Of a stretch of 64,000 nt of DNA, positions 7,433 to 63,877 are shown piece by piece. The notes below the pieces were generated by a model. It was given only the letters and a program-made list of their open reading frames with translations, was not told the DNA's origin and ran no database searches. Location of the stretch: contig OZ038378.1 in assembly GCA_964036045.1 (NCBI GenBank), forward strand, positions 7,440,001 through 7,504,000, given 5' to 3'. A program made the position numbers and the translations under genes. This DNA is from Eutreptiella sp. 'Long Island Sound 2002' (Eukaryota; Protista; Euglenida). The number at the start of each line of letters is the position of its first letter. Positions within the stretch are counted from its first letter, which is position 1.

Positions 7433-7966
7433 TTTGCGTGTTTAACTTCGCCTGCAACCAATGAGGAACAAATAACTTTCCACCAATTCCCAGACTGGTA
7501 AAAGTAAATATCTATACACTTGCAGAGTACTCTCAGAGCCTCAGACATAGAGAAGGGATGCGCACAGTCAAACATGGAAAAGGCACACCCGTGCACTTGC
7601 ACATTTCTCAGACCTCAATGGAGAACGGATGCGTAACACAATATACCATTCTTAAACCCATTTCTTGGAAACATCTGCTGCTCGACCCAAATCTGGAGTG
7701 GCGCCGCAAAAAACGCGGTTGGCTCTCAAGCGGTGACGGTATGCAGACTGCGGCCCTAGCAGACTGCGAAAGACTGCGCGCGAACATGCGACACGCGCAT
7801 TTACGACAACCGAAAAAAGGACTGCAACTGATCTACTGCAACTGATCTTCTGCTAAAAGGCGACAAGGATGTTTTGAACCGTTCTGCAGCCCAAATTTAT
7901 AAAATTATTTTACTCTACTGCAACAGATTATTTTATCGCCAGATAAGGGAACGATACCTTACTGGT

Positions 7967-8890
7967 AAATCCACTCCCTCCTACTCATTTTCAACTCCCT
8001 CCTACTCATTTTCAACTCCCTCCAAGTCAAAATCCACTCCCTCCTACTCATTTTCAACTCCCCCCTGCTCATTTTCAACTCCCTCCAAGTGAAAATCCAC
8101 TCCCTCCTACTCATTTTCAACTCCCCCCTGCTCATTTTCAACTCCCTCCAAGTGAAAATCCACTCCCTCCTACTCATTTTCAACTCCCTCCTACTCAGTT
8201 TCAACTCCCTCCAAGTGAAAATCCACTCCCTCCTACTCATTTTCAACTCCCTCCTACTCATTTTCAACTCCCCCCTGCTCATTTTCAACTCCCTCCAAGT
8301 GAAAATCCACTCCCTCCTACTCATTTTCAACTCCCTCCTACTCATTTTCAACTCCCTCCAAGTGAAAATCCACTCCCTCCTACTCATTTTCAACTCCCTC
8401 CTACTCATTTTCAACTCCCCCCTGCTCATTTTCAACTCCCTCCAAGTGAAAATCCACTCCCTCCTACTCATTTTCAACTCCCTCCTACTCATTTTCAACT
8501 CCCCCCTGCTCATTTCCAACCCCCTCCAAGTGAAAATCCACTCCCTCCTACTCATTTTCAACTCCCTCCTACTCATTTTCAACTCCCCCCTGCTCATTTC
8601 CAACCCCCTCCAAGTGAAAATCCACTCCCTCCTACTCATTTTCAACTCCCTCCTACTCATTTTCAACTCCCCCCTGCTCATTTTCAACCCCCTCCAAGTG
8701 AAAATCCACTCCCTCCTACTCATTTTCAACTCCCTCCTACTCATTTTCAACTCCCTCCAAGTGAAAATCCACTCCCTCCTACTCATTTTCATCTCCCTGC
8801 TGCTCATTTTCAACTCCCCCCTGCTCATTTTCAACTCCCTCCAAGTGAAAATCCACTCCCTCCTACTCATTTTCAACTCCCTCCTACTCA
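7967..8890. repeat. Composite minisatellite of 21-nt modules inside the MULE-like element
   Basis: Modules CTCCTACTCATTTTCAACTCC, CTCCAAGTGAAAATCCACTCC and CCCCTGCTCATTTTCAACTCC in higher-order order. A degenerate inverted copy lies at about 10266-10345. Confidence 0.95.
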
Positions 8891-17500: not shown

Positions 17501-20500
17501 TGCTTTTGTCACCCCATGGGGCCTGTTCCAGTGGACAGTGCTCCCCATGGGGCTGAAGACGGCCCCCCAAATGTATCAGCGTATGGTCTCTGATTGCCTT
17601 AGTTCTTTGGGCCTAGAGCCATACATTGATGATTTATTATTGGGCACCCCTGATACTGAGGATAATCCTGATTTGGACGCACTTGTTACTGATTCCTGCC
17701 TTCGGCAGCATGAGTCTGAGCTGCGCAGATTTCTGCAGCGTATGGATGACTGTGATTTGACCATTAAGCCGTCCAAGATGCTGCTTTTTGTGCAGCGGGT
17801 GCGTTTTTGTGGTCAAATTCTGTGCAGGGGTCGGAGATGTCCTGATCCTGAAAAAACTGCATCGGTTCAGCGATGGCGTTGGCAGGACATCCACACGCCG
17901 ACCCAGCTTAAGGCATTTTTAGGATTTGCACAGTGGTATGCACTTTATATAGACAAATTCGCGGACCTTGCTGCACCTTTGACGGATGCACTCCGTGGCC
18001 TGGACTTAACAAAAAAAGGCAAGAGTAAGTCGGCGCATCCGCCACTTTCTGCGAGGGCCAAGAGGGAGTTACAGGACAGACTGAGGCAGCAACATCCTGG
18101 TTTGTCTGCTGCCCAGAGAGAGCGTTTGCTGCGTCAGCATGTGTGCCAGCGGGAGAACCGCATCCATTGGAGTGACCACATGGTTCGATGCTTCGAGCAA
18201 CTGAAAAAAAGTCTCTGTCAGGATGCTGTGTTACACTTGCCGGATACCACCAGGCAGTTCTGGATCCGGTGCGATTCCTCCGAGTATGCAGTGGGGGGGG
18301 TATTGGAGCAGAAGGGCTGCTCCTGTGCTGAAGCTGATTGCAGTTGCCCGTTACGCCCAGTCGCATTTTTTTCCCGCAAACTGCAAGGCACGCCTGGCAA
18401 GGGCCAAAGGGCCTGGCACATCCGCGACAAGGAAACCTACGCAATTGTGGCCACTCTCTTCAAATTTCGTAGTTGGCTACAGTCAGCACAGGTCAATTTG
18501 CGTTATCCGGTCACAGTTTTGACCGACCACCGAAGCCTGGAAAGTTGGACCCGGGAGGATTTCGACACTGTGTCTGGTCCAATCGGGAGGCGAGGCCGGT
18601 GGCATCAATTTTTGGCCCGCTTCAAAATTGAAGTGGTATACACAAAGGGGGAAAATCAGGAAGTTCCTGATGTTTTGTCGCGGTGGGCCTACCCCGCCAT
18701 GCATTATGCGCCAGATGTGTCGCTGCATGGTTCTGAGCAGGACCAAAGGGGATGGGACAACGATGACCAGGAGGTGCGGCAGTGGGCAGATCAGCTAGCA
18801 GAGCTGCGCTCTGTGTGCGTTAATGTGCGCTCCATTTTTTCTGATTGGTGCGCCAAGCAGCCTTCCCTGCAAGGCTGCCCTGATTCGTGGCGTCATGTCA
18901 GCGATTGTGTTTGCATGTCTCCTTGTTTGCAGGATTCAATCAGTGCTGTGGAGGAAGATGATGTACAGTTTTCACTTGCTGAACGCCGATTGAGACAGGT
19001 TTACAGCACTTCCTCACCCCTTTCCCGGTCTCTTAGGAATAAAAAGTTTAGGACAGTCAGGCGTAACATCCGTCAGCAGAACTGGTCTCCTGCAGCGATG
19101 GTGGCTGCCATGCAGTGTGCCCCTGGGGCCAATGTGGCTGAGGGCGCTGATGGTGTTTCAGATCTGACGTGGGCCAGTGTCCGTGCGAACACTGTCCCGC
19201 CTGATGTTTCAGTTTTGTTTGCTGATTGGGAGCCTGAGTATCGGCAAGATCCTGAGTGGCAAGGGATTTTGGCGTCCCTGCAACAGGATGACCCGCATCT
19301 CAGGGCTCCAGGGTGCTGCATATACCGTCCCAGTCCTGGGACGTTGCGTATTCGTAGGGACGGGAAGCATGTTGTCCCTCGGAGTCTGATTACCAAGGTT
19401 ATTGCAGCATGCCATACGTATATACATGGGGGGGTGGATAAGACGTATCATATCTGCCGCCGCAAGTTCTCCTTTTCTGGGTTGACGGATCGCCAGCTCT
19501 GGTTGGAGGTTAAATCTTTCTGTGACTCCTGTGAGGTCTGTCAACAGACCAAGCCCAGAACGGGGATTCGACCGGGAGAGGTGGAGTTCTATCCTGTTCC
19601 AGATGAAATTTTCAGTAGCCTGGCAATCGATTTTGTCGATTTGCCTACGACAAAGGTCAATGACGTGGTCTTCGACTACGCGATGGTGGTGGTCTGCAGG
19701 TTTACAGGCTACGTGCTGGCCATCCCCACTACCAAATTGGGGATGGACAGCAGGAAAGCAGCCACACTGTTTTTAGAAAGGGTTGTCTTTTTTATGGGAT
19801 TACCCAAAGAGGTATTCAGTGATAATGCCTCTGTTATTAATTCTGATTTTTTGAATGACTTGTTCGATTTGAGCGGGATAGAACACCACACGAGTGTGGT
19901 TTACAAACCATCCACAAACGGCAGGGCGGAGGCCGCGGTCAAAAGTGTGGTCATGGCCCTCCGCAAATTTTTAAACCAGCGGCCACGTAGCTGGTACCAT
20001 GCACTGCCGCTGGCACTGTGGGGGTTGAATGACCTCCCTGGGCTGGTGGCCCCCTATTCCCCCCACAGATTGGTTTTTGGGAGGGATCCTGTGGGATTTG
20101 GGGAGTGTCCGCCCATTGTCCCTGGCGAGGGGGCACAAGAGGCGCAGGATTTTTTTGATCGCCTGGCCTCTGAGCGCAAGCAGGTGCATGACCATCTGGT
20201 CAAGTTGCACCACGACGCTTCAGCCAAATTGACTGCCAAATTCAGGGACATACCCTTCCGGGAGGGGGATAGGGTGTGGGTTCGTGACCTGCCGCGCAAG
20301 GACCAGCCCAATTTCAACAAGTTGAAACGAATTTGGCAAGGTCCCTACGAAATTTTAAGGTGGATGGGGGGGGGCAGATATTTGGTACAGACCAACAGTG
20401 GACCCACAGGTCAGCAGGTGTTGCAGCGTGAGAGGCTGAAGTATTACAGGTCCCCTGATCCCAAAACCAAGGTGCCTCTCAGCTACTACTCTGACCGACA

Positions 20501-20714
20501 GCTTCCACCGAGTGATGACACTTATAATGTTGAGCAGGTTTTGGACCACAGGGGTTCTGGCCCCAAGAAAAATTATCGAAAGGTGGAGCTGTGTATAGCA
20601 TGGATGGGACATCCTGATCGGACCTGGGAGGATATCAGGAAGTTTGTTGGTCGCAATAATGACAGGGTTGAGGATTACTGTCGCCGTCATGGCTTGATGA
20701 AATATTTGCAGTAA
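14517..20714 (+). CDS. pol: Pol of element 1: protease - Dam-like MTase - RT - RNase H - integrase - chromodomain
   Basis: PR VDLGS (14925); MTase-like FVDAFS (16356) and WLHPPQ (16479); RT WRLVIDYR, DLEDGFHQ, PMGL, YIDD (17622); RH CDSS..VGGVL, DHRSL; IN H-x3-H..CxxC, IDF, SDN, GRAE; chromodomain YNVEQVLDHR..W..TWE from 20523. Frame is open from 14517. Confidence 0.95.
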   Translation, partial: RGRRHRKKRTRGPMRVSRKTGAPAPPTTVGVSSSLQSEPVPTAPVALSPAMVPPGRSELPFTDELRLPVTVSLRAISSSPERMPFEPQRTVRRQKVERVRRRRAELPEDAKTELLVAASVKYRDCQACDRQAPMLVDLGSMCFAIAPRSFFPEGTLVPATRPLRISAVNGTRLEGGTQGAVVDLGIAIEGCDGGVVEVVCEGAFVYMAEVQEQLIVGYPFCKAYGLIVDPVRDCLMDALCVSECGCPAQVRTLLQVSGAGSAPQSSSGSVSVVHSGGRQRRTKNYCRRLIDLASDSDSEGETASGVPRMAGAPELILSFSRLMPAVTAVTAASLAASLISVVSMIPTLSSLSSPASQDSSCAMPCNAEIPTSSEQQCHNSDRLCTCAKDCFCVKECMARRIRPTWRIPLAPGRTNSFEFINHADEGHCCPCKLPYEDTDSEQGISDANSEEDTPTPAVRTLREAELPPDSFAGDWGRYKQHTGVWDSQAKDGEWRRSEGPPQVHTSAVPVCSCVVDEVCQRCISVESESELTSDPLLEAGLCPTPLFSRRIRQQYDKTFRKVMAFPRHERKAWMSQRVRQSAKSVYNRGKQILLPKVRDAVLKWAGLQHQPFVDAFSSRKSRLFHSYWDAEDNALQQNWSYDPSSKRNDKMLWLHPPQHLLSEVVQKILLDEACGILVVPVQKQFSWFWSLGEAALDWWDLDPSVPIYKNEQGVVYKQPNWTTRVVLFDAQGSASRASGGRTWGDVDEVKGYCDPDNREWEDEDQPVRLDNSPSTHYPLSDDQYEADDECAGRRSRCVTCPAPFSVREARLRMLSEGSPQYRALQERSVRSVVEGDNADPRCQPIRVRLQEEFSKVFTFPDDIRTVNPSTRGKYGVASISLKSGAKPQRVTPYRAVGLRDAAFRELITKFSQRGMLEPSSSVWAARAFCVPKPGGKWRLVIDYRYLNSQIDDEQFPLPVIDDMFLKQSKNAIWSIFDLEDGFHQMHLDEASRPLTAFVTPWGLFQWTVLPMGLKTAPQMYQRMVSDCLSSLGLEPYIDDLLLGTPDTEDNPDLDALVTDSCLRQHESELRRFLQRMDDCDLTIKPSKMLLFVQRVRFCGQILCRGRRCPDPEKTASVQRWRWQDIHTPTQLKAFLGFAQWYALYIDKFADLAAPLTDALRGLDLTKKGKSKSAHPPLSARAKRELQDRLRQQHPGLSAAQRERLLRQHVCQRENRIHWSDHMVRCFEQLKKSLCQDAVLHLPDTTRQFWIRCDSSEYAVGGVLEQKGCSCAEADCSCPLRPVAFFSRKLQGTPGKGQRAWHIRDKETYAIVATLFKFRSWLQSAQVNLRYPVTVLTDHRSLESWTREDFDTVSGPIGRRGRWHQFLARFKIEVVYTKGENQEVPDVLSRWAYPAMHYAPDVSLHGSEQDQRGWDNDDQEVRQWADQLAELRSVCVNVRSIFSDWCAKQPSLQGCPDSWRHVSDCVCMSPCLQDSISAVEEDDVQFSLAERRLRQVYSTSSPLSRSLRNKKFRTVRRNIRQQNWSPAAMVAAMQCAPGANVAEGADGVSDLTWASVRANTVPPDVSVLFADWEPEYRQDPEWQGILASLQQDDPHLRAPGCCIYRPSPGTLRIRRDGKHVVPRSLITKVIAACHTYIHGGVDKTYHICRRKFSFSGLTDRQLWLEVKSFCDSCEVCQQTKPRTGIRPGEVEFYPVPDEIFSSLAIDFVDLPTTKVNDVVFDYAMVVVCRFTGYVLAIPTTKLGMDSRKAATLFLERVVFFMGLPKEVFSDNASVINSDFLNDLFDLSGIEHHTSVVYKPSTNGRAEAAVKSVVMALRKFLNQRPRSWYHALPLALWGLNDLPGLVAPYSPHRLVFGRDPVGFGECPPIVPGEGAQEAQDFFDRLASERKQVHDHLVKLHHDASAKLTAKFRDIPFREGDRVWVRDLPRKDQPNFNKLKRIWQGPYEILRWMGGGRYLVQTNSGPTGQQVLQRERLKYYRSPDPKTKVPLSYYSDRQLPPSDDTYNVEQVLDHRGSGPKKNYRKVELCIAWMGHPDRTWEDIRKFVGRNNDRVEDYCRRHGLMKYLQ

Positions 20715-21638: not shown

Positions 21639-23539
21639 GGGTGCGGTTTACGACAAAAACCATTTGTTTGATGCAAGTTAGGTGTGTCAGCCTTGGCCAT
21701 TTAGGATTCCAGGCCATTTTGATGTGACAAGGGGCCAATGGCATTCTTAATAAAGAAACCAAATTTTAGATTCAATTGGTCATTTAGACCTAGTAGCATT
21801 GGGTTTCCCTTCGTTGGCAATAGTTTCAGGTTGCCATGGTGATATCATTATGTATCATCATCATGGCCACCATGCCGGTTTGGGGCCGGTTTAAGCCCAG
21901 TATTGAGGTTTCGGATCATTTTTTGTGACCTTAAGGGGCATTGAGCTTGACCTTTGAATGTTAGAAATGCTTTAAACGCAGTAGAGCCTTGACATCACAC
22001 TGTGGTAAAAGTTAGGTCCATATGAGGCACACCTTTTTACTACCACACAACAACTCCAAAACAAACACAGACATAGCCCCTAACCACTAGTAAGTAGTGT
22101 CTAGCAACGACGATACATCTTTGAGTTGGACACTTTGTTGAGCCAAAAAGAGGCTTTGAAATACAAAAAGAACCAAGCCAAAACTCAACCATAGACCGAG
22201 GATATGACTATCATCCTTCGAGGGCACCTTGGTAGTGACGCGTTACCGTGGGGGGTCTTGTCCATGGGGCACGCTAGGGCGGACACGCTAGCAGGCACGG
22301 AAATCGTTGTTCGTTCAAGTAAAGAAAATGAACACGGTGATCATACCCCGACAAATCACAGTAATCGTGCAATGAACTCCAACCTCATGAAGACGATGCA
22401 CTGCTCTTGAATAGAGGTATTCCATACCAGACTTCACGTGCTGGCCCTTATTGTCCAAAAATACCAACAGTGATAGACACAAGTGACTATCGCAATGAAT
22501 ACATGCAAACAATACATACATGCATCTTGTCATTGTGTGCGCTGCTCCGTCCTTGCCCTCAGTTGCACACATATCAATATGCAACCTACAATGGTCCTAT
22601 ATGATCGACTCTGCTCATTTTCATTACATCTTGTGCATTCTAGCATGTCTTGGTTGATGCTCGTAGCAACAACTTTTTTGAAAAAACTTTTCATGGACAT
22701 GCGTATGATGAAGTACACACTTTCGTCAACCCCGCTAATATTTTTGCGAATTGGCCACTTTTGACAGGCAAAAATTCGGCAATGGGGATAAATTAGTCGA
22801 ATTGGCCAAGAAAATTTAGATCCGAAACCTTATTTATGAATGATTTTTCACGGCAAATAATGCCGCACAAGTGCATTTTTGCATGCATATTCATTGCTAA
22901 AAGAGTAGGACTGCAAGACATCAGTTCAAAAAAGGACATGCAAATGAGATCGAAAGAAGTCACATGATAAAGAAAAGGAAACCCAACTTTTTCGTACAAA
23001 CAAAAGATTTACAGATTTGTGAGCAAAGACTTTTCATTTCCCGGCGCTCAACAATACACGCTACAGTTTGAGCGCAAAACAAAAAGATAAACAAAGTAAT
23101 CAAGATTAGCTATTGGTTCATCAAGATCCAACTTGGTAGGTTGAAATTATGAATTCTTTATTGTACCTTTGTGATGTTGCATGCGTAATTTTGCTTAATC
23201 GGTACACATGTCTTGGATTAAAATGGACGGAGTACAAATTATCAAAACAAATGTTTGCAATGTTCTTAATTTAGATGAAATATTTTTCAGCTTATTAGCT
23301 GCTTCGAGCCCCTATTTGCTATGCAATTAATACACATAGAGTAGGAAGACAACTAGTTCAATGTACAACAACTTTTCTGTTTATGGTACCAAGCACCATG
23401 CAGGGAAAGGCTGGACAAAGCAAAGATTCATGTGACGCTTCATTTTCACAACCCTTGGACATGATATGATGTATCATGTCTTAATTCTACATGTCCGTAA
23501 TGCGCTCCGTGATGAATATATGAAAATACCTACAACAAC

Positions 23540-24079
23540 AGTGAAGTGGACCCACAATCCTAAGCACCACAGGTTAAAAAGGTTTTGACAGATCGACACA
23601 TTGATGTCATTTTACTGGCATGCATGTCATTTGCTGATGCATGATGATCATGATTTGGATGGTCACTGATGCATGATGATCATGATTTGGATGGTCATTT
23701 ATACTGATTTTGTATCATTGCAACCCTGTGTCTCTAAGGCTATTGGAGTCGCTTTTACTACTATTTAACACAGTTTCGTGCTATGCGCCCCTCTTTGAGT
23801 GGGAGCCTTTGTGGGCTATTGGCGCTATTCATTCTTTTGCTCTTGGTAGGAAATACCCATGGTGGTCACATGTGCACAACACAAATAACAAGCAAAGGGC
23901 AATAGAGAAAGCAAATAAGCAAAGCGTGTAAAGTAAACGAAGTGAATGGAAGACTGCGAGTGTAAATAAGTCAGTGGTTTGTCACATACTCTGTGTTTGT
24001 ACAGCCTCAGTGTGATACAATGAATGAGTCCAAGGTGCAGTGCTTTCTAAGGGGTGCTGGTTAGAGCCTAAATCTTAGT
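23540..24079 (+). repeat. 5' LTR of element 2
   Basis: Direct repeat of 34874-35413; contains a 32-bp tandem duplication CTGATGCATGATGATCATGATTTGGATGGTCA. Confidence 0.93.
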
Positions 24080-24208
24080 GGTAGCAGAGCGAACGATTCT
24101 GAAGGTGTCAACTATACAAAGGCGCCTGATCTGTCTGTGTCTGTCTGTTCTGTCAGTTCTGTGAACAGTTCTGCCTGTTTGAATCTGAACTGTGATAAGA
24201 CGAGTGAC

Positions 24209-25538
24209 ATGGATTCCCCAACCACAACTGAGGCGAAAGAAAAAGACACCCCTACAACAACCTCCACAGATGAGTCCCATGAGACCACCTCAGAGTCTGT
24301 GAAAGAATACAGACGAGAATTAAAGGAAGTCCTTGAATCTAAACCCTCATCCTCAGAAAACCGTGCGTCTAAAAGTCTCAACCCTGATCCAGAGGTAAAG
24401 GTGCGAGATGTGTCGGGTCCCAGCGCAGAGACAGAAGTGCGCGAGGACACTCGTGAACACGAACCCATGCGCGAAGACGCTCGAGGTGAAAGGCACGAAA
24501 GCGTCGACAGGGACGACGCCAAGCACGAAGACGGCAGCGTAGGTGAACCGGAGGAATGGAAGCAAGCAGTTGACTTTGCGAAGGAACTAGCGAGCGAGGG
24601 TAAGCTAGAGTGGTTTAGGACCATGATGGCCAGGATTGAGTCAGGGAGAGTGGACGAGAGGAAGGATGAGGATAGGGAGTCGAGAACAACAGTGTCCGAG
24701 AGGTCAAAAGGGAAGAAGCATGACATAGGTGAGTTCAAGTTTGGAAAACCAGGACCACCTTCCTCACCTCCCACTTCCTCGACAAGTTCTCACACTTCTC
24801 GTTCGACAAAGACGAAAAGGTCGACAACCAGCAAAGGTGCGTCGGTGGCGTCCACGACGTCGAAGCTGAGCCGTGCGACGGAAATCCAAGACTCGTTGTC
24901 GAAGATGTTGGAGGAGCAGAAGAAGATCTCCCGACGGTTAGACGAGTTGGAGGAGTCCGGGAAAAGTCGCATCGAAAGTGACCTGAACACTTCTGCGCTC
25001 TATAAGGTAACCGGACTCCACCTGTTAGACGAACATCAGAAAGGCATTTCACCCTTCCTTCCGAGGATCAAGGAGTCGTACCTGCCGGACGAGTTTGCTG
25101 TGAGGATCAAGGTGGGTAGCTTGCAGGAGGCGCGCGACAAGCATGGGTTAACGGCGCTTGCACTGCTCGCCGTTTCACCTTCCAAGGTGGATGACAGCGA
25201 TCTCGACGACAGCAAAGATTCAGGGAGTGGTACGAAGGGCACAGCGAAAGGAAAGCTGGAGATACCTCTACCTGTGTTCACTGGGAAGCGCCTCGACCTG
25301 TACGCGCGTGACTTCGTGAGGTACCTACGAATGACAGGGCAGAAAGCTGCAGATGAGATGACCCGCGCTGACCTGATCGTGACAGGCTGCAAGAACGAAT
25401 GGCTTCGAGGAGTGGTAGACGACATCTTAACCACGTCGGAATCATGGGTACACTTTCTGAATCAAGTGGAGTCTGCCTTCCCTCACTTCGAGACGGATGC
25501 ATCCATTCGCGGAGCCTTGGAGAAAGTACAGAAACTTA
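24209..25538 (+). CDS. gag: Gag of element 2, 5' part (interrupted by nested TIR element)
   Basis: ORF 24137..25543, first ATG at 24209, with retrotransposon gag-like LPVFTGKRLDLYARDF. Removing 25539-27252 fuses it in frame (..VQKL|KELPTP..) to 27253-28124, giving 734 codons. Confidence 0.85.
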
Positions 25539-27247
25539 CTTAGGCGGCTCAAGTTGCATGGTATAAAACGACAGAAAGTGCCCAAAATACAGGGCCTCAA
25601 AAAGCATCAAAAGAACCATTCTCTGGCTCGCAAAAAATCAAGCCGTTTTTGAAACACCAAAATAACTCTTATGTAAGGAATTTTTGCCTTTTCTTGGCCC
25701 TGATGGGTCCAGGAAATGCATTCTTTGGGGCAATGGACTGTTTCTTGCGCGAGGCCTCGCGCAAGAAGCAGTCCTTTGCCCCTTCAAAGTCAGGTAATGA
25801 TGGTAGAATTGAGGAATCAAGCAGGCGCCTACACTGGAGTGACATTACAGGCACCCTTGACTTGATCACATTGTACAATATGTTTAGGCGGGCGGACATT
25901 CAGCGCTCTAAACAAGCCTTGAAAATCTCATTGATGACTCAAGAAATTATTTCTAATATTGTTGCATTCCTAACAAAAGGAACACATACGTTGGAGGTGT
26001 TGCACAGGGTCCATCCTTCAGCATTGCCCATGATGCACACCTGCAACACGTTATGGGGAGTGTAGAGCAAAAAAAAGAGTATCACTGGTAACACATGAAG
26101 CATGTCCACTCAACAGATGATGCCGAGCTGGACAGGGACCCCCCTTGTAGCTTTGGCCTTAGAAGAATTGATCCTTCCGTGGTTGACTATAGATCAAAGT
26201 AAAATGTGCAAAGAAAATATGAATGTGCCATGCGTGGCACTTTTTTGAGCGTTTGTTTGGGCCAAAAAAACTGATTTTTTGGAGAGTAAAATGCAATGTA
26301 GTGCAAACGACACCAATTCTCAAGATGATGTTCGATACCTGGAGAAAGAAGGTGCCCTCGGGGAAGCAGTCTGCCAAGCGCAGGGGCTGACCAAGCCCAA
26401 AAACAGTTTTTCCGCCTCCGGGGGGGGCAAGCTTCTGGTAAATTTCAATGACTCAACGACAATTTAGGTACTCGTTGCTTCAGTGAACGTTGTGCACAAG
26501 TGCTATCAGATGAGAACCCCTCACAATGGTACAAAGAATATATTTTCTGGGCCTTTTTTTGCGCGAGGCCTCGCGCAATGAGGAATGCAATGCAGTCCCA
26601 GAACTTGAAAGTCACAACCTATACCTCTTTTTTTCAGGCAGTGCAAATCAAAAATCAAACCGTTGGGTGGGTAGTAAGACCACTCGACCCTGAAGCCTGT
26701 TTCCGAAGGAAAATGAATCGGGTGAGGTTTTTGGTTTAGTAAGTTATGCGCGAGGCCTCGCGCATGGGTTAGCCCTTGAACCACATGTTGCATATGCTTT
26801 GCATTGATATTGAATCCGCCATGCCTCTGTTTCAATGATCCTTGGTCTTGATTGCGCGAGGCCTCGCGCATAGAATTCGACCAATAAATCATTTTTCCAG
26901 GTATGCAATGAACATGCAGAACAGAAAATGATGTTGCAATCATTTTTTCTGCAGACCATGTTCATCCAAAAAAACAAGGGGAACGGAAAATGAATTTATT
27001 GGCCAATTTCTGCTAAAAGCGGATCATTTTCCACTGAAATCGTAAGATTTATTTATTTTTTCATAGTTTTTTTTTGTTTTCGACTGTCCACAAAAAGGCA
27101 CAAAATGGCACAAATGGTAAGAAAGATACTTTCTTTGGACTAATCTTCTGTTTCCAAAAAACTGAGCCTGTGAAAAACTATTTTTTTGCATGGTCCAAAT
27201 TGGGTACATTTGGTGTAATTTTGACCATGCAACTTGAGCCGCCTAAG
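25539..27247. mobile_element. Nested non-autonomous TIR DNA transposon, 1709 bp, 5-bp TSD
   Basis: Perfect 24-bp TIR CTTAGGCGGCTCAAGTTGCATGGT at 25539-25562 and 27224-27247. TSD ACTTA at 25534-25538 and 27248-27252. Exact removal restores the gag frame. Confidence 0.95.
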
Positions 27248-27252
27248 ACTTA

Positions 27253-28124
27253 AAGAACTCCCAACTCCTGCCGATGTTCGTCAACTGCTGCAGAAGCTCA
27301 AAAGCCTTATGACCCAGTTGAAGATTCCTATGTCCGAGACCGAGAAACTCCTTTTGCTGACCCGAAAGATTCAGAAGAAGACTTGGACCGAATGTCGGTC
27401 GACCGTGGAAAGGAAGGCGAAGACGCACACCTATCAAGACTTGGCTGACTTGCTGGAGGAACTCGCCCTCGAACAAATATCAGACCAACATGTCGAAGGT
27501 GAACGCGAAGCTCAACTCAATTTCCTGAAAGGAGGGAACGAGAACAAAAACCAGAACCAAGAACCGCCTCCCGAAGCTGGTCAAGACGAAGAAATCCAAG
27601 ACTTATACTGGTCAGAAGGACAAAAAGGCAACGGAGGCAAAGGCAAAGGAAAAGGACGTGGGAAAGGCAGCGGTCGTGGAGGCGGTCGCGGAGAGTGGGT
27701 ATGGCAACCGCCTCAATTCCATTCCATCGTGTGGTGCGAGTACTGTGGGAAAAAGAACCATGCTCATGACCAATGCTGGACGAAAGAAAGGGACGAGAGG
27801 AAAGCCCGCGCTGCAGCCAAGAAACAAGGAGAAGATCCTGGCAAAGGGAAAGGCAAAGGCGACGGAAAAGGCAAAGGCGACGGAAAGGGCAAAGGCAACG
27901 GAGAGAAAGGTGGCAAAGGGGAATCCGGCAAAGGACAACCAAGCCAAACCACACCGCCACCCAACGCGATTCCCTTGCCTGAAACCGCTGAAGGAGAAGA
28001 AGGACCAAGCAATCGAAAGAGAAGGAGGTTCCTCAAGCTTCAAGAGAACCTTACCAACATGGCCAAATCCTGTGGACTTGCGTTGACGATGGACGCAAAG
28101 CCACTCCCTCCGCAAGACAAGTAG
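27253..28124 (+). CDS. gag: Gag of element 2, 3' part with CCHC knuckle
   Basis: CEYCGKKNHAHDQC and GKGKG repeats; ends in TAG (28122-28124) in frame with pol. Confidence 0.88.
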
Positions 28125-31100
28125 GGAGGCGGCTCTTTGGGGAAGGGCTACCTGTTGCCAGTCGAAGTAACCGAAGCATCCGCGATTGAAAGTTTTATTG
28201 ATACGGGGGCTACGAGTAGTATAATGGCGGCGAAACACGTACCTGAGGGAGAAATTGAGTACGCGCCGAGTGTAGGTATTCGTATTGGCGACGGGAGAAT
28301 ATGCCTGACCGAAGGGAAGTACAGAGGGACGGTGATTCTGGGGAGAAGGAGATTACCGAAAAGTTTCTTAGTCCTCGAGACGGACGCGTTCGACGCAGTG
28401 CTCGGTGAGGACTTCTTCGAGGAGAACCCGGAGATTCGTTACCTGGGCCTTCAGTCACCGAGACACCTCCTAGTACGGACAGACGACGGAGAGTGGGAGA
28501 AGGTGCACCTCGAAGAGACCGCGGAGATTGTCGAAGGAGTAAAGGTCTTGAGGGACATCAGCTTTGACCTGGACACGGAAGTTAAGGTCGAAGGGCTGCT
28601 GCGTTTGGAGAAAGAAATGCTACTAACCCTGGAGACCTACACCTTAGCGACAGAGATGAAGGTACACGCGTACGAGGAGTTGAACATCGAAGGTGATCCC
28701 TGCGGTGACGATTTTATCGAACTCTTCGCTAACCACGTTAACACAGACAGCGAACTCTACTGTTGGAGACAAGGCAACAGCGCCTGGTGGTACGATTGGC
28801 GAGACCTGGGGAGATGGAAGTACCTGTACGCCAACCCACCGTTCTCCCAAATGGAGAAAGTCCTGACGAAAGTCGTGTTGGAAGGTGCACGAGTAATCCT
28901 TGTCGTACCTGAAGAAGGGAAATGGATGAAGAAAGCGTGGAGAGAATTACTGACCAAGCTGACAATAACCCAAGTACGACTACCCGATGTTCCTATGTAC
29001 AAAGTTGACTACGGGGTGGAGCTACTGCCCGCTCCCAAGTGGCGAACGAATTTATGTCTTGTTGACGGATCGCTCAACCCGGTGGCGCGAGAGGACTTGA
29101 ACCCCGAAGTTGTCGAGAAGATCACAAAGAACAACCGAGGATGGGGAAGAAAGCACATGTTACAACACTTTCTTGACCTGAAGGAATCGCAACAAGACCG
29201 AAAACGCGAAGACATGAAGGTGACCATCAAAGAACTACCCAAAGGAAACCGAGAATTCCCGGCGGAAGAGAAAGGTGAACTCTCGGAAGAAGCGCACGAC
29301 AGCGATGGGCTGTCGGAAGCTCCTAGTATAAGCACCATCGCACCTGTGACTGAAGGGAGCTACCCAACTTCGATGGAGTACGAGGACATGTTCAACGACG
29401 TTCTTTTGGCTTGTGAAAACGAAGAATTGTTGCTCCGACGAACCATCGAGGAGAACCTACAGCCGAAGAGCGAATGGCATGGATTTCAGTATGGGTTCGA
29501 AACAAAGAAGCGAAAGACGAATCTAGCTAAGCCGACAGAGTCGTGGCCCATGTCAACGCAGGATCGAGAAGAAGTGAAGGCCCTACTCTGGACGCGCATC
29601 GATCAGATTCAGAAAGAGGAGTTGAAAGACCTCTGGAAGTCTAAGGTTTACTTGCCCGATCACGATGATGGAGCGACAGACGAGTACTCGGAGGTCTTGA
29701 ACTACACCGATCTGTGTGACCTGTTAGAAGAGTACAGGGAGACTACGGACTACTATGCCGATGAGGAACTCAACACAGGTGGCGCGAAGAGATGCAAGAA
29801 GAACAAACGCCAGAGGAAGAAAGAACGTACCAAAAGATGTGAACGTGCTTTTGGGTTGACTGAAGTCGGGATACCCGAAGAAGTGAAACCGGACGGTCTC
29901 CACAACCAAAAAAAGGATGAGTTCGGGCGAAGCAACCTGCAAGCGAGCGAGGACTTCATGAGCAAAGTTAAAGAACACGACGAGCGTGTGTGGAACATCT
30001 TACACAAGTACCAAGAGGTGTTCGGACCATTGCCATCACCTGGAACCTGTAAAAAGCTGGTACCGCTTGACTTGGAGCTGAAAGAAGAGCACGCCAAAGA
30101 TCGAATAAGGTCGAAGCCTTATCCGTGTTCCAAAGCTGACATGGACGAGATCATGCGGCAAGTTTTGGAGTGCGTGGAGGCAGGGCTGATCGAGGAATAC
30201 AAGGAGGGAGACTACCCCAAGCATTGTTCCCCTTGTTTCCTAGTGGCGAAGCCAGGGTCTACGGCGAAGAGGTTAGTCGTGGACTACCAAAAGCTCAACC
30301 GCAAGATCAAGCAGCACAGTGGGTCCCTGCCGTTTATGGAGAACACGGTGGAAAACGCAGCGGACTGCAAGTTCAAGACGAAGATGGACAAGAGGTCAGG
30401 CTTTTGGCAAGTGGACCTGACGGAGCGCGCAAAGGACATGATGGCTTTCATCACTCCACAAGGCCGTATTTTCAAGTGGCGAGTGATGCCTTTTGGCATT
30501 AGCAACGCCCCAGCCTTGTTCCAGGAGATGATGTCTCAAGTCCTGTGCCTCGTCAAGAAGAGACCAGCCGTTCAAGAGCTACTCACAAGAGGTGCCGTGT
30601 TGGAGGCGCACATTGACGACGTGCTGCTAGGGACCAACTCGGTCGAGGACCATTTGGTACTCTTGAGTGAGTTTTTCGAAGTCTGTCAAGAGCAACACTT
30701 GAGGATAAAGCTGGAGACGTGCGAGTTCCTCCGGAGTGAAATGGAGTATCTGGGGTTTACAATTGGACCGGGATGGTGGAAGCCAACGGATGCAAAGTTG
30801 CGACCATTGCTCGACTTCGACCTGTCTGAAGTCAATGGAAAGGCCGAAGGTGTCAAGAAAATACGCCAGTTCGTGGGGTCGTGTAACTTTTACCGAAGAC
30901 ACCTGAAGAACTTCACCTTCAGCAGTGCACCCTTGACCGACCTCATCAAGAACGAGACCAAGTGGCAATGGACAGAGAAAGAGCAAGCAGCACTAGAGGA
31001 AATGAAAGGAAAGCTTAAGAACTGCCTGATCTTAGGCGTACCTCGGCCAGTCGGTGAGATGTTGCTGGTTACGGACGCGTCGGATGTTGGAGGCGGAGGT

Positions 31101-33308
31101 ACACTCTTCCAATGGCAACGCCTGAACAGGGAAATGTGCCAAGAAGTGGACCAAAAGCTCAGAACGCTGGGCGTAAACAGAGACGGAACGCTACGACACG
31201 AGTACAATGAAGACGAGTGGCGTTTGGTCCCGTTAGGTCACTGGAACTGGAAGTGGAATGACGCCCGGAAGAACTACCCAACCTACGAGCAGGAGATCAT
31301 GAGCGGAGTCCTGTTGCTGGCAAGCCAGACTCGCATCGTGGGGTCAAACCCTGTTACGTGGTTGTGTGATCAGGAACCGGCACAAGCATTCCTACATAAG
31401 CCTCCACCCGAACAAAAGAGGATCAGGAGATGGTGGACCTTTTTATCACAACTTCGATTGGCGACCTTCCACATTCCTGGCGTGAAGAACGAGTTATGCG
31501 ACTACCTTTCACGAGGTTCGTTCAACGACTTGCTGGGACGAGACACGGAAGAACTCGCGAAGGAGGCTTTCGCTAAGATGGACGTGCAGTTGGACCTCTT
31601 CGCAAAGGCTACACCCTCGAAATCTACGGAATGGAAGGTCACAGACCTGTTGCCCGAGTATCCCATCCTGAAAACGTTGAAGGAGGGACGAAGCTTCGTA
31701 GATGACGGAGGAGTCCAATGGGCACGTACGGCGAGTCACCTGTACAGAGAAGAAGTGATATGTGTACCGTCAACACACGTGAAGTCGATGGGGCGATGGG
31801 CACACAAGACGAACGGACATCCTGGAGTGGAACGAACACGTTGGTTTTTCGAGAAGCATTTCTACACAACCCTGAGCCAAGAGCGATTGAACGAAGTCCT
31901 AAGGGAAGTTTGCATGGAATGCTCATGCTCGAAGGCCAAGCAAAGCACCAGTGCTGATCAAGGTTTAACAGCTCACTTACCAATACCGAGAATGGTGAAC
32001 AGTGTTCTGTACCTGGACTTCACGGAGATGCCCAAGTATTCAGGGCACGACTTCGCCTTGCTCGTGACCTGTGCATTGAGCAGCTACACACGTGTGTTTC
32101 CGCTCACGAAGAGATGCGATGGAGAAACTGTCTTGAAAGAGCTGTTCGAAGGTTGGATACAAGCCTACGGGATGCCGAAACGGATACACAGCGACAGAGA
32201 CATCAGATTTACCTCAAACACTGGCTGGTACACCGGAGTCCTCAAGAACATGGGCGTCGAGGTCGACTTCGGAACGCCGAACTATAAGAGGAAGGACACG
32301 CAGTGCGAGAGGCAGATCAAAGCGTTCAAAGCGATTACAAGAATACTACTTGCCGAAGAAAGTAGCCGCAACTGGATTAAGCTGGTGCCTGTAGCCGTTT
32401 ACATGATGAACAATCAAATCTCAAGTCGGACCGGATACGCTCCCACCGAATTGTTTTTGGGACATCCGGGTTTCTTTTACGAGTTCCCTACCGCGGACGA
32501 TTGCAACGTGAAGGTGAAAGGATGGCTTGAAGAGCAAAGAACCATGGCTGAGAAGGCACAAGAGCTGCTGACCAGAGTGCGTAATCGAGAACACCGTCGA
32601 CAAAACAGAGGGAAATCACACGCCGAGTACAGAGAGGGAGACCTGGTACTCGTTCATCATACTCGTTTTCCTCGATGGCCACGAAACGACCTGGATCTGC
32701 CGTACTTCGGACCGTACCTGGTGACAGAAGTTGGGCCCAGTACTGTCAAAGTTAAGGCGAGCCCAAGCATGGGAGGGTTCGTCGATGTGGGTTACAACCA
32801 ACTAAAAAGGTACACCGCGGTGGAAGATGACGACCTGGAAGCATGGGAAGAACTGGCGATCGAGGCGGAGAGGTCGAAGATGGCGGCTGACGAGGACGAG
32901 AACGAAGGCGGCGTGCAAGAAGAAGACGGGGTACAGCAGCTTCCTGAAATGGACGACGAAGAAATGAAAGAGAAGGACTGCTACACTGTGGACGCGATCC
33001 TGCAGCACAAGTACAAGCACGGGTGGCGATTTCTCACACGATGGGCTGAATACGAAGTTAGCGACAGCACGTGGGAACCTATCAGCGCATTCGTGTTAGA
33101 CAACGGTAATCTGACATACCAGTTTGTCTCGTACTGTCGGCTGCACGATCTCAGTGGGATCCTAGAAACGGCAAGGAAGATGGCTCAAAGGAAGTCGGAA
33201 CGAACGCTACGTCGCGAAGAGAAAAGGGAAGAGACACGGAAACGAGTAGACGATGAGCAAGAGCCAGAGGCAGTGCCAAGAAGGAGCAAAAGATTGCGAG
33301 CAAACTGA
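28125..33308 (+). CDS. pol: Pol of element 2: protease - Dam-like MTase - RT - RNase H - integrase - chromodomain
   Basis: PR IDTGA (28200); MTase ELFA (28719) and YANPPF (NPPF at 28833-28844); RT RLVVDYQ, MPFGI, HIDD (30609); RH TDASDVGGG, CDQ; IN H-x4-H..C, LDF, SDR, CERQ; chromodomain YTVDAILQHK..RWAEY..TWEP from 32982. No ATG near the start; frame is open from the gag TAG. Confidence 0.95.
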   Translation, partial: GGGSLGKGYLLPVEVTEASAIESFIDTGATSSIMAAKHVPEGEIEYAPSVGIRIGDGRICLTEGKYRGTVILGRRRLPKSFLVLETDAFDAVLGEDFFEENPEIRYLGLQSPRHLLVRTDDGEWEKVHLEETAEIVEGVKVLRDISFDLDTEVKVEGLLRLEKEMLLTLETYTLATEMKVHAYEELNIEGDPCGDDFIELFANHVNTDSELYCWRQGNSAWWYDWRDLGRWKYLYANPPFSQMEKVLTKVVLEGARVILVVPEEGKWMKKAWRELLTKLTITQVRLPDVPMYKVDYGVELLPAPKWRTNLCLVDGSLNPVAREDLNPEVVEKITKNNRGWGRKHMLQHFLDLKESQQDRKREDMKVTIKELPKGNREFPAEEKGELSEEAHDSDGLSEAPSISTIAPVTEGSYPTSMEYEDMFNDVLLACENEELLLRRTIEENLQPKSEWHGFQYGFETKKRKTNLAKPTESWPMSTQDREEVKALLWTRIDQIQKEELKDLWKSKVYLPDHDDGATDEYSEVLNYTDLCDLLEEYRETTDYYADEELNTGGAKRCKKNKRQRKKERTKRCERAFGLTEVGIPEEVKPDGLHNQKKDEFGRSNLQASEDFMSKVKEHDERVWNILHKYQEVFGPLPSPGTCKKLVPLDLELKEEHAKDRIRSKPYPCSKADMDEIMRQVLECVEAGLIEEYKEGDYPKHCSPCFLVAKPGSTAKRLVVDYQKLNRKIKQHSGSLPFMENTVENAADCKFKTKMDKRSGFWQVDLTERAKDMMAFITPQGRIFKWRVMPFGISNAPALFQEMMSQVLCLVKKRPAVQELLTRGAVLEAHIDDVLLGTNSVEDHLVLLSEFFEVCQEQHLRIKLETCEFLRSEMEYLGFTIGPGWWKPTDAKLRPLLDFDLSEVNGKAEGVKKIRQFVGSCNFYRRHLKNFTFSSAPLTDLIKNETKWQWTEKEQAALEEMKGKLKNCLILGVPRPVGEMLLVTDASDVGGGGTLFQWQRLNREMCQEVDQKLRTLGVNRDGTLRHEYNEDEWRLVPLGHWNWKWNDARKNYPTYEQEIMSGVLLLASQTRIVGSNPVTWLCDQEPAQAFLHKPPPEQKRIRRWWTFLSQLRLATFHIPGVKNELCDYLSRGSFNDLLGRDTEELAKEAFAKMDVQLDLFAKATPSKSTEWKVTDLLPEYPILKTLKEGRSFVDDGGVQWARTASHLYREEVICVPSTHVKSMGRWAHKTNGHPGVERTRWFFEKHFYTTLSQERLNEVLREVCMECSCSKAKQSTSADQGLTAHLPIPRMVNSVLYLDFTEMPKYSGHDFALLVTCALSSYTRVFPLTKRCDGETVLKELFEGWIQAYGMPKRIHSDRDIRFTSNTGWYTGVLKNMGVEVDFGTPNYKRKDTQCERQIKAFKAITRILLAEESSRNWIKLVPVAVYMMNNQISSRTGYAPTELFLGHPGFFYEFPTADDCNVKVKGWLEEQRTMAEKAQELLTRVRNREHRRQNRGKSHAEYREGDLVLVHHTRFPRWPRNDLDLPYFGPYLVTEVGPSTVKVKASPSMGGFVDVGYNQLKRYTAVEDDDLEAWEELAIEAERSKMAADEDENEGGVQEEDGVQQLPEMDDEEMKEKDCYTVDAILQHKYKHGWRFLTRWAEYEVSDSTWEPISAFVLDNGNLTYQFVSYCRLHDLSGILETARKMAQRKSERTLRREEKREETRKRVDDEQEPEAVPRRSKRLRAN

Positions 33309-33934
33309 CCTCCGAATACGAGATGACCGTAGAGGTGCATCCAGGTTAAGTATGTGTTGGAGATGAAGTTGTGGTAGGCGGCGATGTAGATGGAGAGCAG
33401 CGCGGCGACGACGGCGGCGTGGGTTGCGCGCTGCTGCTGCTCAGGGCTGATGCCCTCCACTTCCACGATCACCTCCACGTCCTCAACCTCCAAGAGGGAT
33501 TCGTCCTGAGGGAGAGCGGGAGGACCATGGCGAGGAGGGATTACCCACTCCTCGGGCACAGGAACACTGGGGCCTGGAGGGTCCCAGGTCCACTCCCAGT
33601 GGACCCCAGCAGGGGTGAGCCGGGGGGCGCGCCGCATGGAGCGGCGGGGCACGCCTGGAAGCGCGGCGCCTCCTGATCCGAACCACTGGGCAGGACTTGC
33701 AGTTGGAGTCTGCAAGATCCAAGCCCCATGGAGCGGAACCCACGTCGGCGCGGTCAACCCAGCAGGCCGTCCGTGCTCATACGCCGTGTTGACGTACGAC
33801 GGCAGCGACGGAGGCGGGTTGCTGGGGAGATGTGGGGTTTGAGGGGCGACTGGCACAGGCACTGCAAGAGCAGCAGCTGGCGCAGTCGCCGCAGAAGAGC
33901 CCCAACGGCGGGGGACACTCTTCTTTTTAACCAT
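33185..33934 (-). CDS. Antisense extra ORF in the 3' region of element 2 (249 aa from ATG 33934)
   Basis: Long ORF 33185..33967. A strong polypyrimidine tract plus AG (33937-33936) lies 1 nt before ATG 33934. Pro/Trp-rich, then an acidic stretch and a hydrophobic segment. Confidence 0.55.
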   Translation of the reverse strand: MVKKKSVPRRWGSSAATAPAAALAVPVPVAPQTPHLPSNPPPSLPSYVNTAYEHGRPAGLTAPTWVPLHGAWILQTPTASPAQWFGSGGAALPGVPRRSMRRAPRLTPAGVHWEWTWDPPGPSVPVPEEWVIPPRHGPPALPQDESLLEVEDVEVIVEVEGISPEQQQRATHAAVVAALLSIYIAAYHNFISNTYLTWMHLYGHLVFGGQFARNLLLLLGTASGSCSSSTRFRVSSLFSSRRSVRSDFL

Positions 33935-34873
33935 ACTGTTGACAAGAAAAAGAAATAAAAAAGGCACGAAAAGACTGACTTATGCAAGCTGAAGGGAGTA
34001 GTCTGCAAAATTGGAACAAGTCTGAAGCGCGATATCTGAAGCGCGCACGTGCGCTTTGTTTGAGACCAGGGGGGAAAGCAAGACGACCCAAGAAGAGTGC
34101 CTGACTTGAAACTCTGCTGTTTGTTGACTGTTTAACCACGGACTGTTTGTTTGCAATAGTCCAGAGAGAGTTAGGAATAGGTGGAGTGTGACTGACTGTA
34201 CACTGCTGACTGAAAACACTGTTGCGCCTGAGTGTAGTAGATACTGGAAGGGTAGTTGGTTTTGAGACCCTAAGGTTAGGTTTGTATGGCACTGCCCCGC
34301 AAAGGAGTCGGTACCCCAGCAAATCTGTGCGTTCGTCAACCTGCACAATCACTATATCAGACGGATGCAAAATCGTCGACGCGCTGGGCCAAAATGAAGT
34401 AAATCGAACTTGGAGTCGACTGAACGAATGGCCGAAGCATCAAAGAAGGCCTATGAAGACTGAAGTCAATGGAGGACTATGACGACTGCGAAGCCTCCAG
34501 GAGAATGAGTACTGAGGACTGAGGCCCTTCGAAAAGATGCGAATTGCGTGAAGAACGACAACCGTCCTGCGTCGTCCCCAACGCGCGAATGGGAGGATGA
34601 GCAAGGAATACAACAAGATCCAGCCGCAGTGCAGAAGAGGATGAGGACAGCGACAACGCGTCTGAAAGGAATCGAGTACAACGCGTGGCTGTGGACCTCG
34701 AGCAGGGCAGCGTCGAGGCCTTGAAGAGCGACAGCGACCTGGTGGGAGTCTGAAGGATCGTAGCAGTGAGGAGTCGTCAACAGCGACAAGATCGGCGCCA
34801 ATCACAACACCGCAGCGTCGAAAGGCCACGAAGACGCGGCGAAGTACGCCCACGTGGTCTTCGACGAGGGGGG

Positions 34874-35413
34874 AGTGAAGTGGACCCACAATCCTAAGCA
34901 CCACAGGTTAAAAAGGTTTTGACAGATCGACACATTGATGTCATTTTACTGGCATGCATGTCATTTGCTGATGCATGATGATCATGATTTGGATGGTCAC
35001 TGATGCATGATGATCATGATTTGGATGGTCATTTATACTGATTTTGTATCATTGCAACCCTGTGTCTCTAAGGCTATTGGAGTCGCTTTTACTACTATTT
35101 AACACAGTTTCGTGCTATGCGCCCCTCTTTGAGTGGGAGCCTTTGTGGGCTATTGGCGCTATTCATTCTTTTGCTCTTGGTAGGAAATACCCATGGTGGT
35201 CACATGTGCACAACACAAATAACAAGCAAAGGGCAATAGAGAAAGCAAATAAGCAAAGCGTGTAAAGTAAACGAAGTGAATGGAAGACTGCGAGTGTAAA
35301 TAAGTCAGTGGTTTGTCACATACTCTGTGTTTGTACAGCCTCAGTGTGATACAATGAATGAGTCCAAGGTGCAGTGCTTTCTAAGGGGTGCTGGTTAGAG
35401 CCTAAATCTTAGT
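34874..35413 (+). repeat. 3' LTR of element 2
   Basis: Direct repeat of 23540-24079, preceded by PPT. Confidence 0.93.
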
Positions 35414-35450
35414 ACAACAACAACAACAACAGCAACAACAACAACAACAG

Positions 35451-63301: not shown

Positions 63302-63360
63302 AGCATCTTGCTCTGGAGTGGCTAATTTGAAAGCTCGCTCACCCTACCAGCTAGTACGAA

Positions 63361-63877
63361 TCAGAAGTGGCCCACAAGTGGGCAAAATGGCTACCTCACC
63401 CCTGCCGTATCGGGGATCCCCACCGCTTCAGAGCGGGGGGCAGAATCAGAAGTGGCCCACAAGTGGGCAAAGTGGCTACCTCACCCCTGCCGTATCGGGG
63501 ATCCCCACCGCTTCAGAGCGGGGGGCAGAATCAGAAGTGGCCCACAAGTGGGCAAAATGGCTACCTCACCCCTGCCATATCGGGGATCCCCACCGCTTCA
63601 GAGCGGGGGGCAGAATCAGAAGTGGCCCACAAGTGGGCAAAGTGGCTACCTCACCCCTGCCGTATCGGGGATCCCCACCGCTTCAGAGCGGGGGGCAGAA
63701 TCAGAAGTGGCCCACAAGTGGGCAAAGTGGCTACCTCACCCCTGCCGTATCGGGGATCCCCACCGCTTCAGAGCGGGGGGCAGAATCAGAAGTGGCCCAC
63801 AAGTGGGCAAAATGGCTACCTCACCCCTGCCGTATCGGGGATCCCCAGCGCTTCAGAGCGGGGGGCAAAATCAGAAG
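63361..63877. repeat. 85-bp tandem satellite, 6 units plus 7 bp
   Basis: Unit starts TCAGAAGTGG at 63361, 63446, 63531, 63616, 63701, 63786 and 63871. Degenerate relatives at about 48920-49010 and 58330-58410. Confidence 0.95.

Follow-up and report, generated by a model that had tools for sequence, protein, structure and literature searches.

A predicted N6-adenine methyltransferase (DAM) domain fused between protease and reverse transcriptase in a Ty3/Gypsy-type LTR retrotransposon of a euglenid

What is an adenine methyltransferase-like domain doing inside the polyprotein of a long terminal repeat (LTR) retrotransposon, and is it truly part of that polyprotein? The question arises from element 2, which occupies 23540-35413 of the window, by which we mean the whole 64,000-nucleotide stretch analyzed here from the euglenid Eutreptiella sp. 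'Long Island Sound 2002' (GenBank assembly GCA_964036045.1, contig OZ038378.1, positions 7,440,001 to 7,504,000 of the forward strand). A preliminary description of the window had proposed that a Dam-like N6-adenine methyltransferase domain with an intact NPPF motif lies between the protease and the reverse transcriptase (RT) of this element, and had left open whether such an architecture was already described. The domain does lie there, and the fusion of protease (PR), DAM domain and RT is a genuine in-frame, multicopy architecture in a euglenid rather than an artifact of nested insertion. The architecture had been reported in May 2026 by Fernandez-Moreno et al. (bioRxiv 10.64898/2026.05.21.726589, 22 May 2026), which answers that question and makes ours a rediscovery; elements of this kind, the DAM-LTRs, are known, Euglena gracilis included, and the novelty is low. 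Our additions are modest: the demonstration of an in-frame multicopy fusion in a euglenid, a clade of PR-DAM elements, a series of motif IV variants and a structural link to PCIF1.

The domains of the element 2 Pol follow one another in a single frame, as listed here.

28125-33308, plus strand: Pol open frame, 1,727 codons from stop to stop, uninterrupted
28182-28421, plus strand: aspartic protease with IDTGA, aa 16-95 (PF13975, E 3e-5)
28629-29081, plus strand: DAM domain (Dam/DIRS-type N6-adenine methyltransferase-like), aa 165-315, delimited by family-profile alignment
29082-30245, plus strand: spacer of ~390 aa with no recognized domain; constraint within Pol is lowest here
30246-30764, plus strand: reverse transcriptase, Ty3-like, aa 704-876 (RVT_1, E 1e-26)
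30969-31451, plus strand: RNase H (RH), aa 945-1105 (Pfam)
31764-32282, plus strand: integrase (IN), with a weakly matched H2C2 zinc region (aa 1210-1266) followed by a DDE core (aa 1286-1382)
32982-33086, plus strand: putative C-terminal chromodomain, aa 1616-1650 (PF00385, below cut-off)

Counted from the first TTG, the open reading frame (28137-33308, plus strand) encodes 1,723 aa, and it runs without interruption through PR, DAM, RT, RNase H, integrase and putative chromodomain, as the preliminary description had claimed. Some of these assignments are weaker than others. The rve match of the integrase core reaches 29.4 bits (E 1e-6) against a cut-off of 32.6 bits, with H2C2 at E 0.07, and the chromodomain match covers profile positions 1-37 of 53 at 22.3 bits (E 1.2e-4) against a cut-off of 25.1 bits.

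To what does the segment between PR and RT belong? A motif I-like FIELFA lies at 28713-28730 (IELFA from 28716; the string FIELFANHVN begins at 28713 in the Pol frame) and motif IV, NPPF, at 28833-28844. The patterns (D/E)xFA and (N/D)PP(F/Y) are thus both present and align with the family consensus. The N-terminal helix of the domain begins at ~28581, upstream of the profile alignment; the interval 28640-29075 proposed at first covers the domain core, but its first base is out of frame. Scanned directly, the domain falls below the threshold for Pfam Dam (PF05869), with 14.3 bits and E 0.033 against a cut-off of 28.1 bits; the 196-aa DAM segment alone has no Pfam match at E <= 0.01, and the Pfam scan gave no PF12237 match for the domain. 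A score this low could be taken to mean that the motifs resemble those of a methyltransferase by chance and that no such domain is present, a reading to which we assign a negligible likelihood and which is refuted by the profile score, the fold model and the relatives of the domain. This genome contains 3,815 first-look DAM candidates, the best of which score up to 45.6 bits with PF05869, above the cut-off, and the element 2 domain matches the Pfam-passing genome copies with phmmer E values of 1e-12 to 1e-9. A profile of 12 DAM domains from this genome, searched against 1.84 billion public representatives, retrieved 5,667 proteins at E <= 1e-3 and 984 at E <= 1e-10, and PF05869 is matched at E <= 0.01 by 67 of 74 aligned family members. 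Conversely, a profile made solely from 69 public-library sequences scores the element 2 domain at 136.9 bits (E 3e-38 at Z = 1e6). The consensus of the 74-member alignment, VDLFAS..N..Y..AF..W..LW.NPPFS..V..K..IL..P.W, reproduces the DIRS methyltransferase signature given in the preliminary description. By transitive and profile homology, the domain is a member of the PF05869/DIRS-type DAM family.

The fold agrees with this assignment. A single-sequence AlphaFold model was poor (predicted local distance difference test, pLDDT, 52.8) and was set aside for one built from the 74-sequence alignment, which reached pLDDT 95.2 and a predicted template modeling score (pTM) of 0.90. Foldseek returned PCIF1/CAPAM (E 3.7e-4) and KsgA as the top PDB matches of this model. 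An exhaustive structural scan also ranked PCIF1 first (Z 8.6 over 135 residues, root-mean-square deviation 3.4 A), followed by DIMT1, ErmC' and KsgA and then by T4 Dam (Z 7.2), EcoDam (Z 6.5) and M.TaqI (Z 6.0); all 50 of the top 50 matches are class-I methyltransferases, as are the Foldseek matches, with adenine-N6 enzymes in the lead. The nearest predicted structures in the Atlas are eukaryotic RVT_1+Dam clusters, one Euglenozoa cluster and a bacterial PF05869 cluster (template modeling score 0.58). The Rossmann-fold methyltransferase match whose absence would have told against the preliminary description was therefore found, and the modeled domain has the class-I (Rossmann-like) fold of methyltransferases that use S-adenosylmethionine (SAM). 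Profile and model together point to an N6-adenine methyltransferase of PF05869/DIRS type that is small, belongs to class I and would depend on SAM. Phage and bacterial Dam enzymes (PF05869) share with it the small methyltransferase fold and the order of D/E-x-F-A followed by NPP[FY]; the element 2 domain differs from them in scoring below the Pfam cut-off by direct scan and in lying within a polyprotein.

Because PCIF1 comes first in the structure searches, RNA or an RNA:DNA hybrid are candidate substrates. PCIF1/CAPAM (PDB 6IRV-6IS0) is the best solved structural match and is itself an NPPF enzyme, and it could be that the DAM domain, like PCIF1, N6-methylates adenosine in RNA, at a cap-adjacent A or another site of the genomic RNA, and not in DNA. 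Where transcripts escape trans-splicing of the spliced leader, such a mark could alter how stable they are or how they are translated or packaged. We regard both the activity and this role for it as improbable. Three family members do match Pfam PCIF1_WW, PCIF1 is the automatic name of one Atlas cluster from Euglenozoa with this fold, and DIRS1 methyltransferases were assigned to the PCIF1 clade by Iyer, Zhang and Aravind (PMC4738411); methylation of RNA would also account for the absence of DNA methylation in the Escherichia coli assays considered below. The sequence profiles, however, heavily favor PF05869, which is matched by 67 members (best E 7e-12) as opposed to 3 for PCIF1_WW (best E 4e-4). 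A profile search of PDB sequences gave nothing relevant and no PF05869 member among solved structures by sequence, and PCIF1 may therefore lead by default. The Pfam scan of the element 2 Pol revealed neither a WW nor a PCIF1 helical RNA-binding domain, and identity to PCIF1/CAPAM is 14-16%, so the link is one of structural similarity in the methyltransferase core only. Enrichment of N6-methyladenine (6mA) on DAM-LTR DNA, reported in the available text of Fernandez-Moreno et al., also speaks against a purely RNA-directed activity.

What kind of element carries the domain? Two direct-repeat pairs mark LTR elements in the window, and one of them bounds element 2, a complete LTR retrotransposon with the following landmarks.

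23535-23539, plus strand: left target-site duplication (TSD) ACAAC, flank read ...ACAAC/LTR, within a CAA microsatellite that makes its exact length ambiguous
23540-24079, plus strand: 5' LTR, 540 bp, 100% identical to the 3' LTR
24079-24090, plus strand: primer-binding-site-like sequence TGGTAGCAGAGC, read directly 3' of the 5' LTR
34866-34873, plus strand: polypurine-tract-like sequence GAGGGGGG, adjoining the 3' LTR
34874-35413, plus strand: 3' LTR, 540 bp
35414-35418, plus strand: right TSD ACAAC, flank read LTR/ACAAC...

Direct LTRs, TSD, primer-binding-site-like and polypurine-tract-like sequences are thus all present. By analogy with LTR elements in general, we take TGGTAGCAGAGC to be a putative tRNA primer-binding site. 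Most LTR elements have the canonical TG...CA terminal dinucleotides; the LTRs of element 2 instead read AGTGAAG (23540-23546) ... CTTAGT (24073-24079). The RT-RH segment finds its nearest solved structures by sequence in the Ty3 RT entries 4OL8 and 7Q5B (E 4e-33 to 8e-32), with scores exceeding those for caulimovirus, foamy-virus and other retroviral RTs, and no tyrosine recombinase (YR) family appears among the Pfam matches of Pol or of the Gag pieces. On the strength of the Pfam domain order, the Ty3-like RT and the lack of a tyrosine recombinase among those matches, we classify element 2 as a Ty3/Gypsy-type, chromovirus-like LTR retrotransposon with a putative chromodomain, and not as a DIRS element. 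The LTR/integrase lineage named in the preliminary description is borne out in this way, and the RT is Ty3-like and not of DIRS type. The methyltransferase domain of the DIRS1-type tyrosine-recombinase elements (Goodwin and Poulter; reviewed in PMC3266345) is indeed homologous and has these signature motifs too. In them, however, it follows RT/RNase H, a tyrosine recombinase is present, PR and DDE integrase are lacking, and the repeats are inverted or split; in element 2 the DAM domain precedes RT and is accompanied by PR, rve-type DDE integrase, a putative chromodomain and direct LTRs, and membership in DIRS is rejected. With its identical LTRs and intact 1,723-aa Pol, element 2 is a young copy and a very recent insertion.

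Could the order PR-DAM-RT nevertheless have arisen because a DIRS fragment inserted into a Gypsy element, or because the assembly is chimeric? Nested insertions or assembly artifacts were raised as a possibility for some E. gracilis DAM-LTRs in the available text of Fernandez-Moreno et al., and element 2 does contain a nested insertion, in its gag. In Pol, though, this explanation is very improbable. At least 10 copies, located on different chromosomes, have the 1,727-codon frame unbroken from PR through DAM, RT, RH and IN to the putative chromodomain. The frame recurs in 1,723-aa proteins called from an independent ENA assembly, which belong to the single 90%-identity cluster returned by a search for homologous proteins, and the Pfam scan of Pol found neither a YR nor a second RT beside the DAM domain. 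The adjacency of PR and DAM also recurs in diverged public proteins: PR lies directly 5' of DAM in 6 of the 10 nearest public relatives scanned, some others have the order DAM-RT-RH-IN, and the relative P0139 has the DIRS order RT-RH-DAM. The multicopy intact frame and the independent assembly effectively refute a nested or chimeric origin.

The element 2 family numbers ~150 copies in the genome. A spacer DNA probe gave 153 first-look candidates, the top 40 at 98-100% identity, and a DAM protein probe gave ~140 copies at 77-100% identity. NPPF, within YLYANPPF, is found in all 30 genomic copies examined and in all 6 covering members of the independent protein cluster, so that the motif reported as intact in the preliminary description is intact across the family as far as it was surveyed. 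The euglenid context is established by the Euglena spliced-leader 21-mer, which occurs 5,817 times in this genome as compared to 0 for a control; the 3' part of this 21-mer is documented (PMC4778363, PMC2663770). The family is also present on a 1.44-Mb contig of the public assembly ENA ERZ25074135 (L031), at 95% DNA identity in gag, where a second PR-DAM element with NPPF lies 4 kb downstream of the first; this 'metagenome' assembly evidently includes a euglenid genome. Element 2 family DNA was found, moreover, in sequencing runs under two organism labels.

How does element 2 compare with what has been described? The available text of Fernandez-Moreno et al. describes 10,030 eukaryotic DAM proteins and the first DAM domains found in non-DIRS LTR elements, the "DAM-LTRs", which reflect at least 4 independent captures from DIRS together with a complex E. 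gracilis group. The same text reports conservation of Asn-Pro-Pro, chromodomain-bearing DAM-LTRs, and "EpiLTRs" with an additional DNMT. Like the DAM-LTRs, element 2 is a Ty3/Gypsy-like LTR element of a euglenid host, its Pol includes a prokaryote-like DAM domain of DIRS derivation with Asn-Pro-Pro, and it has a putative chromodomain; its DAM domain lies in one open reading frame with LTR-type RT and integrase. One difference is that its RT is plainly Ty3-like, not L1-like. No DNMT family is among the Pfam matches of the element 2 Pol or Gag pieces; element 2 is therefore not an EpiLTR and fits the chromodomain DAM-LTR class. Retrotransposons with a captured DNA methyltransferase are known in another form, the DNMT-carrying elements of de Mendoza et al. 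2018 (PMC5890265), in which the enzymes are C5-cytosine methyltransferases, as opposed to the N6-adenine type predicted for element 2.

What, then, would the domain do? The best explanation of the whole, which we hold with moderate confidence, is that element 2 is a young Ty3/Gypsy element with a DAM domain fused after PR that may mark its own DNA with 6mA. Such a mechanism is plausible. Read-through of the single TAG that separates gag from pol would yield a Gag-Pol product with the DAM domain in it, and the domain would be carried in the particle together with RT. There it could N6-methylate adenines on the element's own replication intermediate, either the RNA:DNA hybrid or the new cDNA. 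A new insertion would then begin with 6mA, which in such protists marks transcriptionally permissive chromatin, and the host AMT1, putative here, could propagate this mark. This follows the model of Fernandez-Moreno et al., in whose available text DAM marks the RNA:DNA intermediate and host AMT1 then maintains 6mA. That text also reports that in two ichthyosporeans and in E. gracilis the fraction of copies methylated with 6mA is larger for DAM-LTRs than for other LTR elements. If retrotransposons bring an adenine methyltransferase of their own, mobile elements may go beyond evading silencing marks and place 6mA, the host's "active chromatin" mark, on their own copies, an idea that is in the literature with the 2026 preprint.

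Several observations weigh against self-marking. Enzymatic activity has been demonstrated for no retroelement DAM, and catalysis by the element 2 domain is a prediction. In the available text of the preprint, DIRS, DAM-LTR and adintovirus DAMs did not raise 6mA in dam-deficient E. coli, and LTR expression in E. gracilis was low or undetectable. None of the sequencing runs that contain the element 2 family is recorded as RNA. Iyer et al. (PMC4738411) considered the DIRS1 methyltransferases to be likely inactive and perhaps RNA-binding or PCIF1-mimicking. Motif IV varies by family in this genome, moreover. NPPF is found in the element 2 family and in one other, NPRF in a sister family 52% identical to that of element 2, NAPF in the family that Pfam Dam scores highest, and a degenerate HPPQ in element 1, the neighbor of element 2 in the window.

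L062:6362-6994, L064:6787-7419 and L063:9200-9871: variant DAM domains on other chromosomes, with motif IV varying by family (NPRF, NAPF)
16191-16760, plus strand: DAM domain of neighboring element 1, motif IV degenerate (HPPQ)

Since these abundant sister families carry NAPF, NPRF or HPPQ, and since NPPF is absent from 25 of 74 diverse family members, a DAM domain can persist without the canonical catalytic tetrapeptide. Selection on the copies themselves speaks for constraint on DAM, though with a bias. Among 23 full-length copies at >=97% identity, with only variants common to at least 2 copies counted, the nonsynonymous-to-synonymous ratio omega is 0.12 for DAM (4 nonsynonymous and 10 synonymous variants, p 1e-4), 0.12 for PR, 0.11 for RT and 0.22 for the spacer, the DAM value being biased downward because the copies were ranked by DAM protein score. 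In a sample that was not chosen on DAM, the independent protein cluster, DAM differs by 3.6 amino acids per 100 as compared to 4.0 for the spacer, so that DAM is not clearly the better conserved of the two. The NAPF family, analyzed by the same design, gave 0.07 for DAM and 0.75 for RT; we did not use this result as evidence, because a low value in DAM only looks like the bias of ranking by DAM.

In one alternative, the DAM domain is a catalytically dead pseudo-methyltransferase. It would be kept as a module that binds nucleic acid or protein, for instance by holding on to the template RNA, or because Pol processing needs it as a spacer or fold. We consider it unlikely, if a serious possibility. 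The abundance and conservation of the sister families with NAPF, NPRF and HPPQ would fit it, as would the E. coli results and the inactive, RNA-binding or PCIF1-mimicking role argued for by Iyer et al. The canonical NPPF in every element 2 family copy seen, on the other hand, tells against it, as does its presence in 49 of the 74 diverse members. Among the 12 aligned DAM domains of this genome, at least 90% have the motif IV Asn and Phe; all 74 members have the motif I Phe, and at least 90% of them have the second Pro of motif IV, a conservation pattern typical for a working SAM and adenine pocket. In favor of the best explanation, DAM is 55-56% identical to that of the sister family (L062, L064), as opposed to 35-38% for PR and 37% for the spacer, with RT at 73-78% and the segment spanning RT and RNase H (aa 881-1105) at 65-66%. 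Over the long term, DAM has been conserved more strongly than the protease, and this signal is more robust than copy-level omega.

A combined possibility also deserves mention. The DAM domain might be functionally PCIF1-like, acting on the element's own RNA or RNA:DNA intermediate and not on duplex DNA, with the NAPF, NPRF and HPPQ families having drifted to a binding-only role and DAM being released as a mature protein of the particle. We offer this tentatively, as a proposal that is rather doubtful. Were it true, the negative E. coli assays would be explained, and the conserved PR-DAM junction would reflect the freeing of DAM as its own mature protein in the particle. The available text of Fernandez-Moreno et al. 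considers the RNA:DNA hybrid and makes no mention of PCIF1. The NPPF, NPRF, NAPF and HPPQ families form a natural allelic series with which it could be tested whether catalysis matters.

The variants of motif IV are distributed over a deeper division. A maximum-likelihood tree of DAM domains resolves two clades (support 100/99). Element 2 falls in the first, along with every one of the nine sequences in which PR-DAM is known. In the second are element 1, the NAPF family and the DAM-RT sequences that lack a detectable protease, all six of them. This echoes the two well-separated DAM clades in Euglena reported in the available text of the preprint. The window holds one element from each recovered clade. 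Element 1, with a Pol at 14556-20714, has LTRs of ~382 bp that are 99.5% identical, and no protease was detected by Pfam upstream of its DAM domain.

The remaining question is how the Pol of element 2 would be expressed, and from what kind of copy. Its gag region contains the following features.

24137-25538 (open reading frame listed as 24137-25543), plus strand: Gag N-terminal half, aligned by tblastn to L062 Gag aa 223-434 (37% identity, E 6e-34)
25539-27247, no strand assigned: nested non-autonomous cut-and-paste DNA transposon, 1,709 bp, splitting gag
27248-28121, plus strand: Gag C-terminal half, aligned to L062 Gag aa 433-596 (E 4e-19)
28122-28124, plus strand: single in-frame TAG between gag and pol (context TAG GGA GGC)

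The tblastn query was the 692-aa Gag of the sister family at L062. The C-terminal half contains a CX2CX4HX4C-like zinc knuckle and Lys/Gly-rich repeats. Because gag and pol have a common frame and are parted by one TAG, followed by GGAGGC, the sequence suggests expression of gag-pol by stop-codon read-through rather than frameshifting. The full architecture of the preliminary description, Gag-UAG-PR-DAM-RT-RH-IN-CHD, therefore stands in its order, the in-frame UAG included, but not for the Gag of this copy, which is split by the transposon.

The nested transposon has termini CTTAGG...CCTAAG with a perfect 23-bp terminal inverted repeat, read from the printed termini, and a 5-bp TSD, ACTTA, at 25534-25538 and 27248-27252. 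It is specific to this copy, as at least 27 other family copies read through the site uninterrupted. Although its LTRs are identical and its Pol is intact, the element 2 copy has probably lost its autonomy, since this 1.7-kb DNA transposon splits its gag. As the LTRs around the insertion are still identical, the DNA transposon family was active very recently. Elsewhere in the window lie three tandem-repeat arrays, at 7844-8800, 46739-47216 and 63273-63952, with periods of 21, 10 and 85 bp.

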